Positions 8,690 through 50,172 of a stretch of DNA of 64,000 bases are shown here, in pieces. Position 1 is the stretch's first letter, and each line of letters opens with the position of its first letter. The translations under genes were made by a program, and so were the position numbers. The notes under the pieces are model-generated. The model worked only from the letters and a program-made list of their open reading frames with translations. It did not search any database and was not told where the DNA came from. Location: the sequence record NC_016163.1. One strand, written 5' to 3'.

Positions 8690-8873
8690 GCAACCTATTC
8701 AAGAAGTACAAGACACTCTTTCAGAAATTAATCAGAGAGAAATTTCACAATTGGTTCATGATATAGTTGTTGATCGTCTTCCAATGAGTAGTATAGCATA
8801 TGAAGAAAAGATGGTATTCAATGGTAGAACTAGCTATCCTTATATAAGATTATTATGGATTAGAAAATGTTAA
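8664..8873 (+). CDS. Hypothetical protein, 69 aa
   Basis: Overlap packing. Confidence 0.55.
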   Translation: MNILRWRGRQPIQEVQDTLSEINQREISQLVHDIVVDRLPMSSIAYEEKMVFNGRTSYPYIRLLWIRKC

Positions 8874-9133
8874 CTTTATTACGTATTAATAAATCTAGAG
8901 AGCATCGCTTAGAAATATTAGTAGAGTCTAAACGATTTTCTGCTTTAGCTGAAGCTGAGGTTCTATTATTACCTTTTTCTCGTAGATTTGAAACAGAATA
9001 TTTGTATTTCCATACTAGCTTTAAAAAATCTGAGAAACCTATAAGTCTTCGTTGCTCGCCAGAATTTGTAAATTTTTGTAACAAAAATACAGGATTCTAT
9101 GATTCTTCTTTAGAAGAACAAATTGTTTTCTAG
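8867..9133 (+). CDS. Hypothetical protein, 88 aa
   Basis: Overlap packing. Confidence 0.6.
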   Translation: MLTLLRINKSREHRLEILVESKRFSALAEAEVLLLPFSRRFETEYLYFHTSFKKSEKPISLRCSPEFVNFCNKNTGFYDSSLEEQIVF

Positions 9134-9137
9134 AGCT

Positions 9138-9150
9138 AACAAAAAAGTAG
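9138..9150 (+). promoter_or_regulatory. Putative late promoter for the ncRNA/tRNA island
   Basis: AACA-AAAAAG-TAG followed by AAATG. Confidence 0.75.
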
Positions 9151-9270
9151 AAATGAAACCTCCGGCTGTGAGCGCATCCCGATTCGGTTACTTTCTAGCT
9201 TCTTTCATATCCTTCTTATTGTTATGGTCTCTAGGAAGTGGGATAAATGGATTTTATCCCACTCCTATTT

Positions 9271-9390
9271 AGTATTTTTATTGTAGGGCAGGTACTTACT
9301 TTTAATCTACAGGAAAATCCTGGGGTTATCCACAGAGAGTATGCAACGTATTGGGCTATACATTGAAACTTGCCCTACAATAAAAATATT
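9271..9390 (+). ncRNA. Unassigned structured RNA B with 21-bp closing stem
   Basis: 9273-9293 pairs with 9368-9388 (one G-U); internal hairpin CAGGA-AAA-TCCTG. Confidence 0.65.
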
Positions 9391-9413
9391 TTATAACAAA
9401 AGAATTAGAAGAG

Positions 9414-9516
9414 TATTTAATGATACTGTATTAGGTTTTCCCTCTTCCTTTAAACCTAATTAAGCCTGGGTTGGTTAGCCGAAAGCAATAGTAACTAATA
9501 CAGTATCGATTAAGTA
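9414..9516 (+). ncRNA. Unassigned structured RNA C with pyrimidine-rich loop
   Basis: GATACTGTATTAG 9422-9434 pairs with 9495-9507; hairpin TTAGGTTT/AAACCTAA closes loop TCCCTCTTCCTTT. Confidence 0.65.
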
Positions 9517-9535
9517 TTTTTTTTTTAAGAATTTA

Positions 9536-9613
9536 GACTCGCTAGCTCAGTTGGTTAGTAGCGGATGACTGTTAATCATCAGGTCGCAGGTTCAAGCCCT
9601 GCGCGAGTCGCCA
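9536..9613 (+). tRNA. trnN: tRNA-Asn(GUU)
   Basis: GATGA-CTGTTAA-TCATC, acceptor GACTCGC/GCGAGTC, CCA. Confidence 0.95.
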
Positions 9614-9623
9614 TATTTATTAT

Positions 9624-9698
9624 TGTCCCTTAAATTAGTGGCTAGACAAATCCATTGTAAAATGGGCGGCACCAGTTCGATCCTGGTAGGGACAACCA
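9624..9698 (+). tRNA. Degenerate tRNA-like gene, anticodon ambiguous (GUA or UGU)
   Basis: Perfect acceptor TGTCCCT/AGGGACA plus ACCA and T arm ACCAG-TTCGATC-CTGGT, but unpaired D arm and 6- or 8-nt anticodon loop. Confidence 0.7.
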
Positions 9699-9699
9699 A

Positions 9700-10046
9700 A
9701 TTAGTCTTATTCCATTAAGACTTACAGACTTAGCTACCAGCTTGGTATCTGAGAGCCTTCTCCCAAGGTTTACCCATAGTTCTATTCGAATAAGGTGAAG
9801 AATAGTTCCGATATAATCACTTCTTAGGAAATGATTAGTGTCTCAGCAAACCGTATGAGACTGAAAGGGTTGAAATAAACGGTTCCTCTAAATTAATAAG
9901 ATTGAATATATCGATCTTAGTGCCAAAGTCGCCAGATACATACGGCATAAATAAAGAGGAGTAGACTAATCAACTACCCTTCTTTATATAAAAATTTCCT
10001 TGTTGAAATGGTAAGGAAGGTAGTTATGCCTGATTCGAAAGAATCT
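9700..10046 (+). ncRNA. Unassigned pseudoknotted RNA D
   Basis: Many short helices; H-type pseudoknot GTCTCA/TGAGAC with loop AACCGT pairing ACGGTT 9879-9884; long-range pairs TATCTG/CAGATA and GGCATAA/TTATGCC. Confidence 0.55.
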
Positions 10047-10060
10047 AAATAACAAAAAAA

Positions 10061-10305
10061 TAGAAGTCCTCGCTTCTAGATGACGGATCAATTTTTTGTT
10101 GTATAAGTCATTAAATTTGAGGTTTTGAGAAAAACTGAGGTTTTTGTCATTAGGCTCTTTACATTTTTGCCCTCACAATTTGTAATTACTTTGCCACTGC
10201 ATATCTTCTTTATGAAGAAAAAATCTACTGTCAGAAGTAGAAACATGAATTCCTTTCAGGCTGAAAGGTGGATGCCCTTATTTAGATAACTCTAGATAAG
10301 GGCAT
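10061..10305 (+). ncRNA. Unassigned hairpin-rich RNA E (own late promoter at 10051)
   Basis: Hairpins at 10061-78, 10080-111, 10113-181, 10252-68, 10272-305; no ORF. Confidence 0.45.
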
Positions 10306-10321
10306 TAACAACCCACGATTA

Positions 10322-10560
10322 CGGGGATGTAGTGTTTATTTTTCTAGGTAGTGAAAGCGTGCACCAGTAACTACCATGTTTACCTCCCACTAAAATGGTG
10401 AAGAGTTAGATCAACTCTTTACTAGGCTACATAGGTATGTAGGGTATTGGAGGTTAAACATTCTATAAATACCAAATGTTAAATTGGTGGAATGCCTATC
10501 CGAGATAACTATCAGATAGAATAGTTAAAAGGGCGTTAGAAAAATTTCACTGCATCCCCG
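10322..10560 (+). ncRNA. Unassigned multibranched RNA F (~240 nt)
   Basis: CGGGGATGTAGTG/CACTGCATCCCCG plus ATTTTTCTA/TAGAAAAAT closing helices; at least five internal helices. Confidence 0.7.
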
Positions 10561-10585
10561 TTCCCTAATTTATTAAGGAACGAAA

Positions 10586-10741
10586 ATGTCTGCTAGTAAA
10601 GAACTTGAAATTGATATCGATAGCGTAGTGTTTAATGAAGATGAGCTTCAAGAGTCCGTTAAACATAACGAAGAGAAAATTGATTCTCAAGAAGTAGTTG
10701 AAGCTTCCGATGAATGTGATGGCGGCGGCTGTAAGATTTAA
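10586..10741 (+). CDS. 51-aa acidic peptide ending DECDGGGCKI, like the ribonucleotide reductase alpha C-terminal redox tail (missed by ORF track)
   Basis: AAGGA RBS, ATG, in-frame TAA, family terminator at 10748; CxxxxCKI as in E. coli NrdA CESGACKI. Confidence 0.75.
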   Translation: MSASKELEIDIDSVVFNEDELQESVKHNEEKIDSQEVVEASDECDGGGCKI

Positions 10742-10909
10742 AAACTTCCCATATCCTCTATTAAGGGGATATGGGGTTTTCTTTCCTTCTTAAAAACGTA
10801 TTTGGTAAACCTTTAAGAATATATTATTTTAGTGATATTGGGTGTTAAAACTCAATGTTAAACAAAAACAAACACTAATTCTAATAAGCAATAAAAGGAA
10901 TACCACAAG

Positions 10910-48561: not shown

Positions 48562-48911
48562 CATTTACATTCATCATAGTTCGTTAATCTATGACCGCTT
48601 TTTAAGCTGCTATATATTGCTATATAGATTAGACTATATCTTAAGTACATAACCTATTATGTACCTCTCCCCATTTCGCTTTAAAGGATTTTATAATTGA
48701 AGCCATTCCACTTCAATAACCTACCACTTGGCGCTACTCTACTTGCTTATTCACTTAGATTTCGGTCTAAGCTATGCTTTCGATAGTCGTTGAACCTTAT
48801 TCAATAATTTTTATATTATTTTAAATAATATAAAAATTCTTAAATCTTGGATGCTGATTGTCTCAATGAGAGTTCCAGCAGTTAAAGGAGTTTATAGTGA
48901 GCATCAAGTTT
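48562..48911 (-). mobile_element. Group I intron (350 nt, no ORF) in polB
   Basis: P1 AGTGAGT/GCTCACT with U-G; TGCTGG..TCAGCA P4; TTCAACGACTA and AAGATATAGTC P7; terminal G 48562. Confidence 0.92.
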
Positions 48912-50172
48912 ACTCACTTTTCATATTAACTCTAGGGCGATCTTCTGGAAGTACACCAGCCGCCTTAGTTAACTTATAGAAAACATCACCGATGAAATTA
49001 GTAATAAAGTAAGTAATTACAGCACCGATACTTACACGTTTTTCTTTAGTTAATTTATCAGGGTCTTCACCTGTTGAATCACAAATGTACTCAATAAATG
49101 GACGAATGTACAAGAATGTTGAGTCAGTATCTGATAACAGTACTGTTTTTCTCATCATTGCTTTTACTTTAGTAGTTTTATTTGAGAATGGATAAGAATA
49201 GAATACGAATGCTTTCATCAATTCATTCAATTCTTGAAGACTTTCTTTAATATCTTCTGGCGGTTTCTCAAAATTAAAATAGTTTTCTACAATTAGATTA
49301 CTTGTTACAAATTCTTCAATAGAAGGTAATTTTAAAAACTCCATTAAGTTATTCTTATAATAGAGCATTTCTCTAACTGAGGCAGTTTGACTTTTAACCA
49401 CCTTAATTACCATGTTTCTAATTTCGTCTGTAACTAGGAAGGTACATTTACCAAGTAGATGCTCTACAACATCATTAGTTGTTAAATCATCATTTAAAGT
49501 AAATTCTGGATCTTCCTCAAGATTACAGATATTATACATATACTGAGTAAGTTCATGTTCAGTATCAAATGTAAAGTTACCAGACATAAAGGCTTCAAAG
49601 CCTAAAATAGCGGAAATGATAATTTGCTGTCCGGTATAAGTAATTGATGGGCCGAGGTCAGGGTTAAAGAATATGAATGAACTTGCCCCGAATGCACCAT
49701 AATAGCTGTTAGCTAGAATTTTAAAGATGAGCTGCTTGATGTCAAGGAAATTATAAAGAGATTTATCAACATCGTTGATATGTTGAAGCATTTCCTTTTT
49801 AGTTACTTTACGAGCTTTAAGTAGGAACTCAAGGAACATTCCTGGAAGGTTTTCTTTCTTATTACGGTTATAGAAAAGAGTATTAAAGCCAGTAATGATT
49901 AATCGTTTATCTTCTGGAAGAACTTTATTGTAGACGACAATATCGGCTACTGTTGCGTCCGAATAAGTTTCCTGAACGTTATTATAGACTACTCCGTTAC
50001 GATTCTTCCAATCCTGCAGATAATCGCTTTTTAGTCTATTCCAATCAACTTTTTTAGCTTTTTTTCTTCCTAATGATGTAAGTTTTTCCTTTAGATCATT
50101 AAAAAAGAAGTCAAACGCTTTCTTTTCATTTTTAGTTAAACTTTCATAAGTAATCAATGTTATACACCTCAT
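48912..50172 (-). CDS. polB: Family-B DNA polymerase C-terminal subunit, exon 1 (probable TTG start at 50157)
   Basis: Motif B KILANSYYG and motif C SDTDS. Confidence 0.92.

Follow-up and report, generated by a model that had tools for sequence, protein, structure and literature searches.

RNA D, a conserved and structured non-coding RNA abutting transfer RNA ends in a tRNA island of the Yersinia jumbo phage phiR1-37

A 64,000-nucleotide (nt) stretch of the Yersinia jumbo phage phiR1-37 genome (NC_016163.1), referred to here as the window, contains RNA D, a real, conserved and structured non-coding element of approximately 350 nt, which represents a new family. All coordinates are window positions, which equal the record positions minus 62,000. 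RNA D extends from 9699 to about 10050 on the + strand, within a 1.45-kilobase (kb) stretch (9134-10585) devoid of credible open reading frames (ORFs), whose annotation consists of a predicted terminator, a transfer RNA (tRNA) gene for asparagine (tRNA-Asn, 9536-9613), a ribosome-binding site and g116, a 52-codon ORF on the opposite strand. RNA D appears to consist of two domains that fold independently, D1 (9699 to about 9890) and D2 (9926 to about 10046), with a decayed tRNA-Ser gene between them. As a whole, it is probably best explained as a selected fold that is released by tRNA punctuation and acts as a trans-acting scaffold of the tRNA islands of phiR1-37-like jumbo phages. A preliminary description had presented the same segment as a multiply pseudoknotted, ribozyme-like RNA of about 340 nt that begins right after a CCA end.

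Ten further distinct homologues of RNA D, sharing 74-96% identity with the window, were found on metagenomic phage contigs of public assemblies (contigs and loci are designated by L numbers). The contigs were reached by searching with the proteins of two small neighbours, g117 and g118, and each RNA D homologue occupies the equivalent position, just as in the window, upstream of the homologues of g117/g118. Conservation of RNA D exceeded that of its neighbour g118 at third codon positions (0.91 vs 0.73 in L019 and 0.81 vs 0.77 in L048). Folding of 9699-10050 (352 nt) on the + strand yielded -90 kcal/mol (z = -4.49), and none of 100 shuffled sequences folded as well; the corresponding z value for the - strand was -2.47. 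The structure was assigned to the + strand RNA because the conserved G-U pairs are kept on the + strand only and the fold scores are asymmetric. A model of 15 helices was derived from RNAalifold predictions and pair counts on an alignment of 11 sequences. Over the whole model, the ratio of kept to broken variant pair types was 30:7, and 28 cells were double-compensated, in comparison to 0-7 when the partners were slid by 1-3 columns. In the D1 core, 96.3% of the cells were paired, six pairs carried double changes and the covariation score reached 0.161, as opposed to a shuffled mean of 0.083 (0/500) and to values not exceeding 0.067 in the slid-partner control. The corresponding data for D2 were 96.9% paired cells, three pairs with double changes and a covariation score of 0.139 vs a shuffled mean of 0.062 (0/500). 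Helices P1, P2, P4, P5, P6, S1, P7, P9 and P11 were supported by covariation. Insertions and deletions also respected the helices, with whole hairpins being lost or extended, such as the insert in the P1 loop or the clean removal of P6 and P7 from L048. The compensatory changes and the invariant cores, which persist across 20-26% divergence, show that RNA D is under selection. What holds of the preliminary description is a real, conserved and complex-folded RNA of this size.

In the model, D1 comprises three 5' hairpins, followed by a junction that is closed by P4 and holds P5, P6 and S1 (all the helices described here are on the + strand). The P1 hairpin (9703-9722; stem 9703-09/9716-22) carried three double-compensated pairs in L048, and its loop contained an insert of approximately 95 nt in five relatives, with the stem being kept. 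Covariation in the P2 hairpin (9729-9753; 9729-33/9749-53 and 9735-39/9743-47) originated entirely from L048 and consisted of one double change (U-A to C-G, in P2b), one change of U-G to U-A and one break. The P3 hairpin (9754-9770), predicted by RNAalifold and exposing an invariant CUCCC loop, was almost invariant, with two mismatched cells in L021. P4 (9772-9870; 9772-75/9867-70) is a long-range helix that had escaped the preliminary description; a C-G pair was replaced by U-A in four sequences, and all the cells were paired. P5 (9782-9805; 9782-87/9800-05), with a conserved 12-nt loop, showed double changes at two pairs, and L048 formed a perfect version of 6 base pairs (bp) after realignment by one column. 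In P6 (9814-9837; 9814-19/9832-37), which is absent in L048, A-U was changed to G-C in four sequences and the next pair from U-A to G-C in two. S1 (9840-9861; 9840-45/9856-61), with an invariant 10-nt loop, is the first stem of the H-type pseudoknot proposed previously. This stem was supported, as G-C was replaced by A-U in four sequences and two further changes, to U-G, were wobble-compatible, leaving all the cells paired. The candidate second stem, S2 (9849-9884; 9849-54/9879-84), is a perfect 6-bp complement that was invariant in 11/11 sequences and was left out of the nested fold. The invariant S1 loop may pair with 9879-84, which would create one H-type pseudoknot. The pseudoknot alone is not beyond chance, because two perfect 6-bp stems in an H-type arrangement arose in 220 of 3000 shuffles (about 7%) of the AT-rich RNA D sequence.

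The two domains are separated by P7, a hairpin with a GCCA tail at 9922-25 (9898-9925; stem 9898-9904/9912-18), in which one double change was found. An intact tRNA-Ser(UGA) gene occupies the place of P7 in L021 (3249-3338) and L051 (904-993), as determined with ARAGORN and Rfam (52.2 bits), and the whole P7 segment is missing in L048. The window retains the first acceptor-strand heptamer AAGAUUG of tRNA-Ser and the G-CCA tail, both shared with L021 and L051, as well as the complementary AUCUU. Given that these elements are kept and that tRNA-Ser is intact in two relatives, P7 looks like a collapsed tRNA-Ser, apparently all that is left of a tRNA-Ser(UGA) gene. D2, too, then starts right after a CCA. 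D2, which is modelled with four hairpins and folded well on its own (z = -3.29), opens with an almost invariant segment (9926-9950) that is mostly unpaired in the model, a 3-bp helix being the only one predicted there. In the P9 hairpin (9951-9987; 9951-56/9982-87 and 9959-64/9974-79), three pairs exhibited double changes of two kinds each, and L048 formed a perfect 12-bp version from different bases. The predicted P10 hairpin (9997-10017), with an invariant 9-nt loop, never varied. In P11 (10018-10031; 10018-22/10027-31), U-G was changed to U-A in two sequences and to C-G in one. The terminal hairpin, P12 (10032-10045; 10032-36/10041-45), combined an invariant stem with a GAAA, GUAA or GCAA loop, so that the variation always remained within the GNRA consensus, as expected of such a tetraloop.

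All the complementary segments listed in the preliminary description were found where it had placed them. Covariation across the 11 homologues upheld the first stem of the pseudoknot and failed to support about half of the proposed pairings. Among the unsupported ones are the two crossing long-range helices, which would have tied the 5' and 3' parts together. The end pair of the first, GACTT/AAGTC (9727/9926), was broken in 6 of the 11 sequences with no compensation, and the second, TATCTG/CAGATA (9746/9933), suffered three uncompensated breaks. The proposed closure of the 3' domain by GGCATAA/TTATGCC departed from pairing by mismatches only at four of its seven pairs, had no double changes and is replaced by P11 in the present model. 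Four of the seven AACTACC/GGTAGTT pairs also varied, two of them by mismatches only and none by double changes, and this pairing competes with the P9b hairpin, which covaries strongly. The changes that break these last two pairings are exactly those accommodated by P11 and P9b, and all four pairings are therefore unsupported. With the loss of these four pairings, the single, multiply knotted fold falls, and one candidate pseudoknot is left.

RNA D starts at a junction with tRNA. The annotated tRNA-Asn (GUU; 9536-9613, + strand; ARAGORN, Rfam tRNA 58.5 bits) is followed by an unannotated tRNA-like element (9624-9698, + strand). Its acceptor stem of 7 bp and its T arm are those of a normal tRNA and it ends in ACCA, but a 5-bp stem with a GNRA tetraloop replaces the anticodon arm. 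The element did not pass as a tRNA, with an Rfam score of 27.1 bits, below the gathering score of 29, and no ARAGORN call. In relatives, the acceptor stem was compensated in L013 and L021, and the loop was GUAA or GCAA. The CCA end lies at 9696-9698, so the preliminary claim that RNA D begins right after a CCA was correct. AAUUA (9699-9703, + strand), the first bases of RNA D, starts at the next base after the tRNA 3' end and was invariant in 11/11 sequences. It was preceded by a tRNA or tRNA-like 3' end in all ten copies with upstream sequence, nine of them ending in CCA and one (L021) in TTCA. The preceding element was tRNA-like in phiR1-37 and L014 and, in most of the others, tRNA-Tyr(GUA) in two sequence forms; L050 carried a degenerate tRNA-Tyr form. 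In L048, bases 1-29 of the contig were read from the alignment as the 3' end of a different tRNA, with an ACCA end abutting RNA D. In six loci, tRNA-Tyr as called by ARAGORN ends on the base immediately preceding RNA D. AAUUA is likely to be the nuclease site of tRNA 3' maturation. Two features of other islands were noted. In those of L049 (627-705), L050 (1448-1524) and L051 (359-435), ARAGORN called tRNA-like genes whose anticodons have four bases (agca, ttaa). In Erwinia phage Machina (L063; 4200-4501), tRNA-Tyr is followed by approximately 300 unannotated nt before the next tRNA, and the RNA D models did not match this stretch.

The AACA-N6-TAGAA motif was enriched, with 10 copies in the window vs 1.8 expected and 18 genome-wide vs 7.4 expected; 17 of the 18 sites avoid long ORFs, and they mostly precede an ORF by 7-91 nt. 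The late promoter consensus of the related uracil-DNA phage AR9 is AACA-N6-TA/G, and no such consensus had been obtained for phiR1-37 at the time of the AR9 study (PMC5312081). The motif fits the AR9 consensus and is promoter-like. One copy lies at 9138-9149 on the + strand (9138-9152 with TAGAA), with A9149 as its would-be start site. The second copy, at 10051-10062 (+ strand; 10051-10065 with TAGAA), comes directly after RNA D, was invariant in 11/11 sequences and marks the conserved 3' limit of RNA D. A copy of the 22-mer of the 9138 site also precedes tRNA-Tyr and RNA D in L019, L021, L049 and L053; the start implied in L019 lies 13 nt ahead of tRNA-Tyr, after a terminator-like hairpin. 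An ORF of 238-239 codons, absent from phiR1-37, was observed between tRNA-Asn and the unit of promoter, tRNA-Tyr and RNA D in L019 (2240-2959), L049 (923-1642) and L053 (904-1620).

According to the proposed mechanism, RNA D would be co-transcribed on the + strand with the preceding tRNA or tRNA-like element from a promoter of the AACA-N6-TA type, resembling the late promoters of AR9. The ordinary tRNA 3' maturation of the host would generate its 5' end by cutting in the invariant AAUUA just past the CCA, with the tRNAs serving as the punctuation that releases RNA D. The released and presumably stable RNA would fold into D1 and D2, with the tRNA-Ser remnant P7 between them and the GNRA-capped hairpin as the last of D2. 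Its function would be that of a trans-acting scaffold which binds a protein or another RNA, and not that of a ribozyme; it would belong to the same broad class as GOLLD, ROOL and the T4 RNAs RNAC and RNAD.

Several observations weigh against this interpretation. The distinct sequences numbered eight for D1 and seven for D2, all from one narrow clade; several compensations fell on one branch and most of the others came from the single contig L048. The stems of S2, P10 and P12 never varied, and D1 alone was not unusually stable (z = -1.18). No terminator was found in the region between RNA D and g117. Family searches with the neighbouring proteins gave no useful match that could hint at a function. 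In its favour, assemblies built from libraries for RNA sequencing (RNA-seq) of infected cells contain the whole island, and metatranscriptomes contain a relative; this evidence consists of assembled contigs, which carry neither ends, strand nor level. However, none of the ten new RNAs in the published RNA-seq study of phiR1-37 lies at RNA D. In the published gene table, the genes flanking RNA D displayed low mean TGR values in the early, middle and late phases (0/0.8/0.8 for g116 and 3.9/1.5/1.2 for g117); the values for g115 and g118 were 110/101/36 and 34,486/27,327/22,550, respectively. The mean TGR of g106, located inside the other tRNA cluster, was also about 0, and RNA from tRNA islands may accordingly be poorly captured. 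The expression data are compatible with low expression of RNA D or with poor capture of tRNA-island RNA. Two observations concern the flanking genes themselves. The small gene g117 (10586-10741) reached 1-4 expression units while its neighbour g118 exceeded 22,000, and the structured RNA just upstream may keep g117 off under laboratory conditions. The opposite-strand ORF g116 (10088-10246, - strand) lies inside the conserved RNA region, had 0 reads aligned in the published RNA-seq and is probably not a gene.

The distribution of RNA D was narrow. The element is single-copy in the phiR1-37 genome, and an nhmmer search of this genome and all the loci with an RNA D profile returned one copy and no distant homologues. 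The DNA search of the phage collection recovered phiR1-37 itself only, plus tRNA-Asn matches elsewhere, and no RNA D match was present in the E. coli genomes searched. In IMG/VR, neither three invariant words of RNA D nor the proteins of the helicase gene and g117 gave anything beyond chance matches. A metagenome scan with a loop-only pseudoknot pattern produced 14 chance matches and did not return the known JGI relatives, which this collection seemingly lacks. Covariance models of the D1 core (R1) and of D2 (R2) gave no convincing match in the complete Machina, AR9 and PCH45 genomes, the best being to partial hairpins with an E value of 0.04. In relatives at 42-47% helicase identity (L009-L012), a deaminase gene adjoins the helicase gene with no island between them. 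The repeated 8-mer GUUGAAAU occurred at chance frequency. In the close relative represented by L057/L058, the first tRNA cluster was followed directly by the g118 homologue, and RNA D, the following RNAs and g117 were missing as one block.

No RNA family in Rfam matched RNA D when 8800-10900 (cmscan, E up to 10) and four homologous loci (E up to 0.5) were searched, and the GOLLD and ROOL models gave no match in the same regions at the same thresholds. A separate match to group I introns was recorded at 48610-49009 on the - strand (63.4 bits vs a gathering score of 50). GOLLD and ROOL have been reported near phage tRNA islands, and the GOLLD linker sometimes contains tRNAs. RNA D resembles them in being phage-encoded beside tRNA genes, with a tRNA or tRNA-like end abutting every copy with upstream sequence, and its nested tRNA-Ser in L021 and L051 is reminiscent of the linker tRNAs of GOLLD. 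Complex folds with pseudoknots (one candidate in RNA D) and the lack of a known function are further common traits. In contrast, GOLLD and ROOL are larger (about 580 and more than 800 nt vs about 350 nt), and RNA D is confined to a narrow clade. RNAC and RNAD of T4 are small stable RNAs from the tRNA region of that phage, classed as late and of unknown role. RNA D likewise lies in a phage tRNA region; it has no sequence relation to them, as no phage outside phiR1-37 was matched in the DNA search. The T4 RNAs are also much smaller, at about 120-140 nt. Punctuation by tRNAs is familiar from mitochondrial transcripts and from MALAT1 with its tRNA-like mascRNA, where tRNA or tRNA-like folds mark the cuts in the precursor. 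The likeness lies in the anticodon-less tRNA-like element (9624-9698), or a real tRNA, ending exactly where RNA D starts; the processing of RNA D would differ in relying on the enzymes of the bacterial host.

Other well-known RNAs were considered and rejected. At E up to 10, nothing in the entire phage genome matched RF00010, the model of bacterial ribonuclease P (RNase P) RNA; the controls were matched. RNA D has two 9-mers, at 9845-53 and 9862-70, that reproduce the sequence of the conserved specificity-domain joints J11/12 and J12/13 of E. coli rnpB in the same order (chance P about 0.06); the topology around them differs from that of RNase P RNA, the second motif of RNA D lying inside the loop closed by S2. 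ARAGORN found no transfer-messenger RNA (tmRNA), and the adjacent tRNA-like element forms a closed cloverleaf that lacks the G3-U70 pair. RNA D resembles tmRNA in its position next to a tRNA-like element, its candidate pseudoknot and its short frame, which starts with GCA AAC like the E. coli tmRNA tag. It differs in that the sole replacement within this frame is a structural compensation in a helix.

Among the alternative explanations, it is possible, and on balance unlikely, that RNA D is a cis-acting trailer or spacer of the tRNAs, which guides or slows nucleases, protects the precursor or spaces the tRNAs, and which is degraded after processing. Such a role would agree with the constant abutment to a tRNA 3' end, with the tRNA-Ser nested in RNA D in two relatives and with the lack of an RNA called here in the published RNA-seq. 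However, RNA D remained constant while the preceding tRNA changed between relatives (the tRNA-like element, two tRNA-Tyr forms and another tRNA in L048), and a length of about 350 nt with at least 12 maintained helices and long invariant loops far exceeds the needs of a trailer. Rather more doubtful is the assumption that RNA D, the RNAs at 10062-10563 and perhaps g117 form one ornate RNA or leader of about 0.9 kb. The block 9715-10584 is indeed continuous and co-inherited in all the relatives that carry it and is absent together with g117 from L057 and L058, no terminator separates RNA D from g117, and RNAalifold proposed a pairing between 9882-89 and 10079-88. This pairing, however, lacks covariation and competes with S2, an invariant promoter-like motif stands between RNA D and the next RNA, and the Rfam models of GOLLD and ROOL did not match the island.

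It is a long shot, derived from the RNase P likeness, that D1 is a tRNA-docking RNA whose invariant loops clamp tRNAs or the anticodon-less tRNA mimics of the island. The S1 loop and the stretch after S1 could reproduce the pair of RNase P joints by which the tRNA elbow is held, and the P10 loop of D2 contains an invariant UGGU that could base-pair with an ACCA 3' end. If this were true, RNA D would protect tRNAs against the anticodon nucleases of the host or collect them in RNA-only assemblies like those of GOLLD and ROOL.

The notion that RNA D is debris of decayed tRNA genes without a present function is disfavoured as slightly more remote again. P7 does appear to be a collapsed tRNA-Ser, and GACUU (9727) together with AAGUC-GCCA (9926) resembles an acceptor stem with a CCA tail. 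Nevertheless, local alignments of nine tRNAs to RNA D did not clearly beat shuffles (P > 0.1 for seven; 0.04 and 0.06, uncorrected, for the best two), and the derivation of RNA D from tRNA genes was thus not significant, except for P7. The tRNA model found nothing inside 9699-10050, and the compensatory changes and invariant cores show selection.

The chance that RNA D is a self-cleaving ribozyme, cutting at its own 5' edge in the manner of HDV-like or hatchet ribozymes and thereby freeing the tRNA 3' end, is very small. The complex fold with a candidate pseudoknot and the exact, conserved CCA junction would suit it. On the other hand, neither the window nor the four homologues searched gave an Rfam match to self-cleaving ribozymes (HDV-like, hatchet, pistol, twister or hammerhead), even when the thresholds were permissive; AAUUA precedes a plain hairpin, and the L021 junction reads TTCA instead of CCA. 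Self-cleavage of this kind also leaves a cyclic phosphate, which would block the charging of the tRNA. The ribozyme-like character suggested by the preliminary description thus found no support in the sequence comparisons, and the conserved junction after CCA would be explained more simply by ordinary tRNA 3' processing. A small peptide, such as that of a 15-codon frame running from 9831 through the pseudoknot, is almost certainly not encoded: the frame is open in most copies, but it has no ribosome-binding site, its start is lost in L048, its bases are invariant at all codon positions, and the sole replacement in its core (GGG to GAG) is balanced exactly by a compensating change in helix P4, 94 nt upstream.

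Large folded RNAs without a known job are rare in bacteria and phages, and the few that are known, GOLLD and ROOL, build unprecedented RNA-only cages. RNA D represents an unrelated and smaller family with the same genomic habit, residing in a phage tRNA island where a tRNA can be nested within it. Its folding model has been corrected to two domains with one candidate pseudoknot, a new long-range helix and a central tRNA remnant. Since phiR1-37 can be grown and transcriptome data exist for it, the role of such RNAs is open to experiment. That RNA D abuts exactly on the ends of tRNAs and tRNA-like elements also suggests a use of tRNA folds by jumbo phages as punctuation marks at which other RNAs are released.

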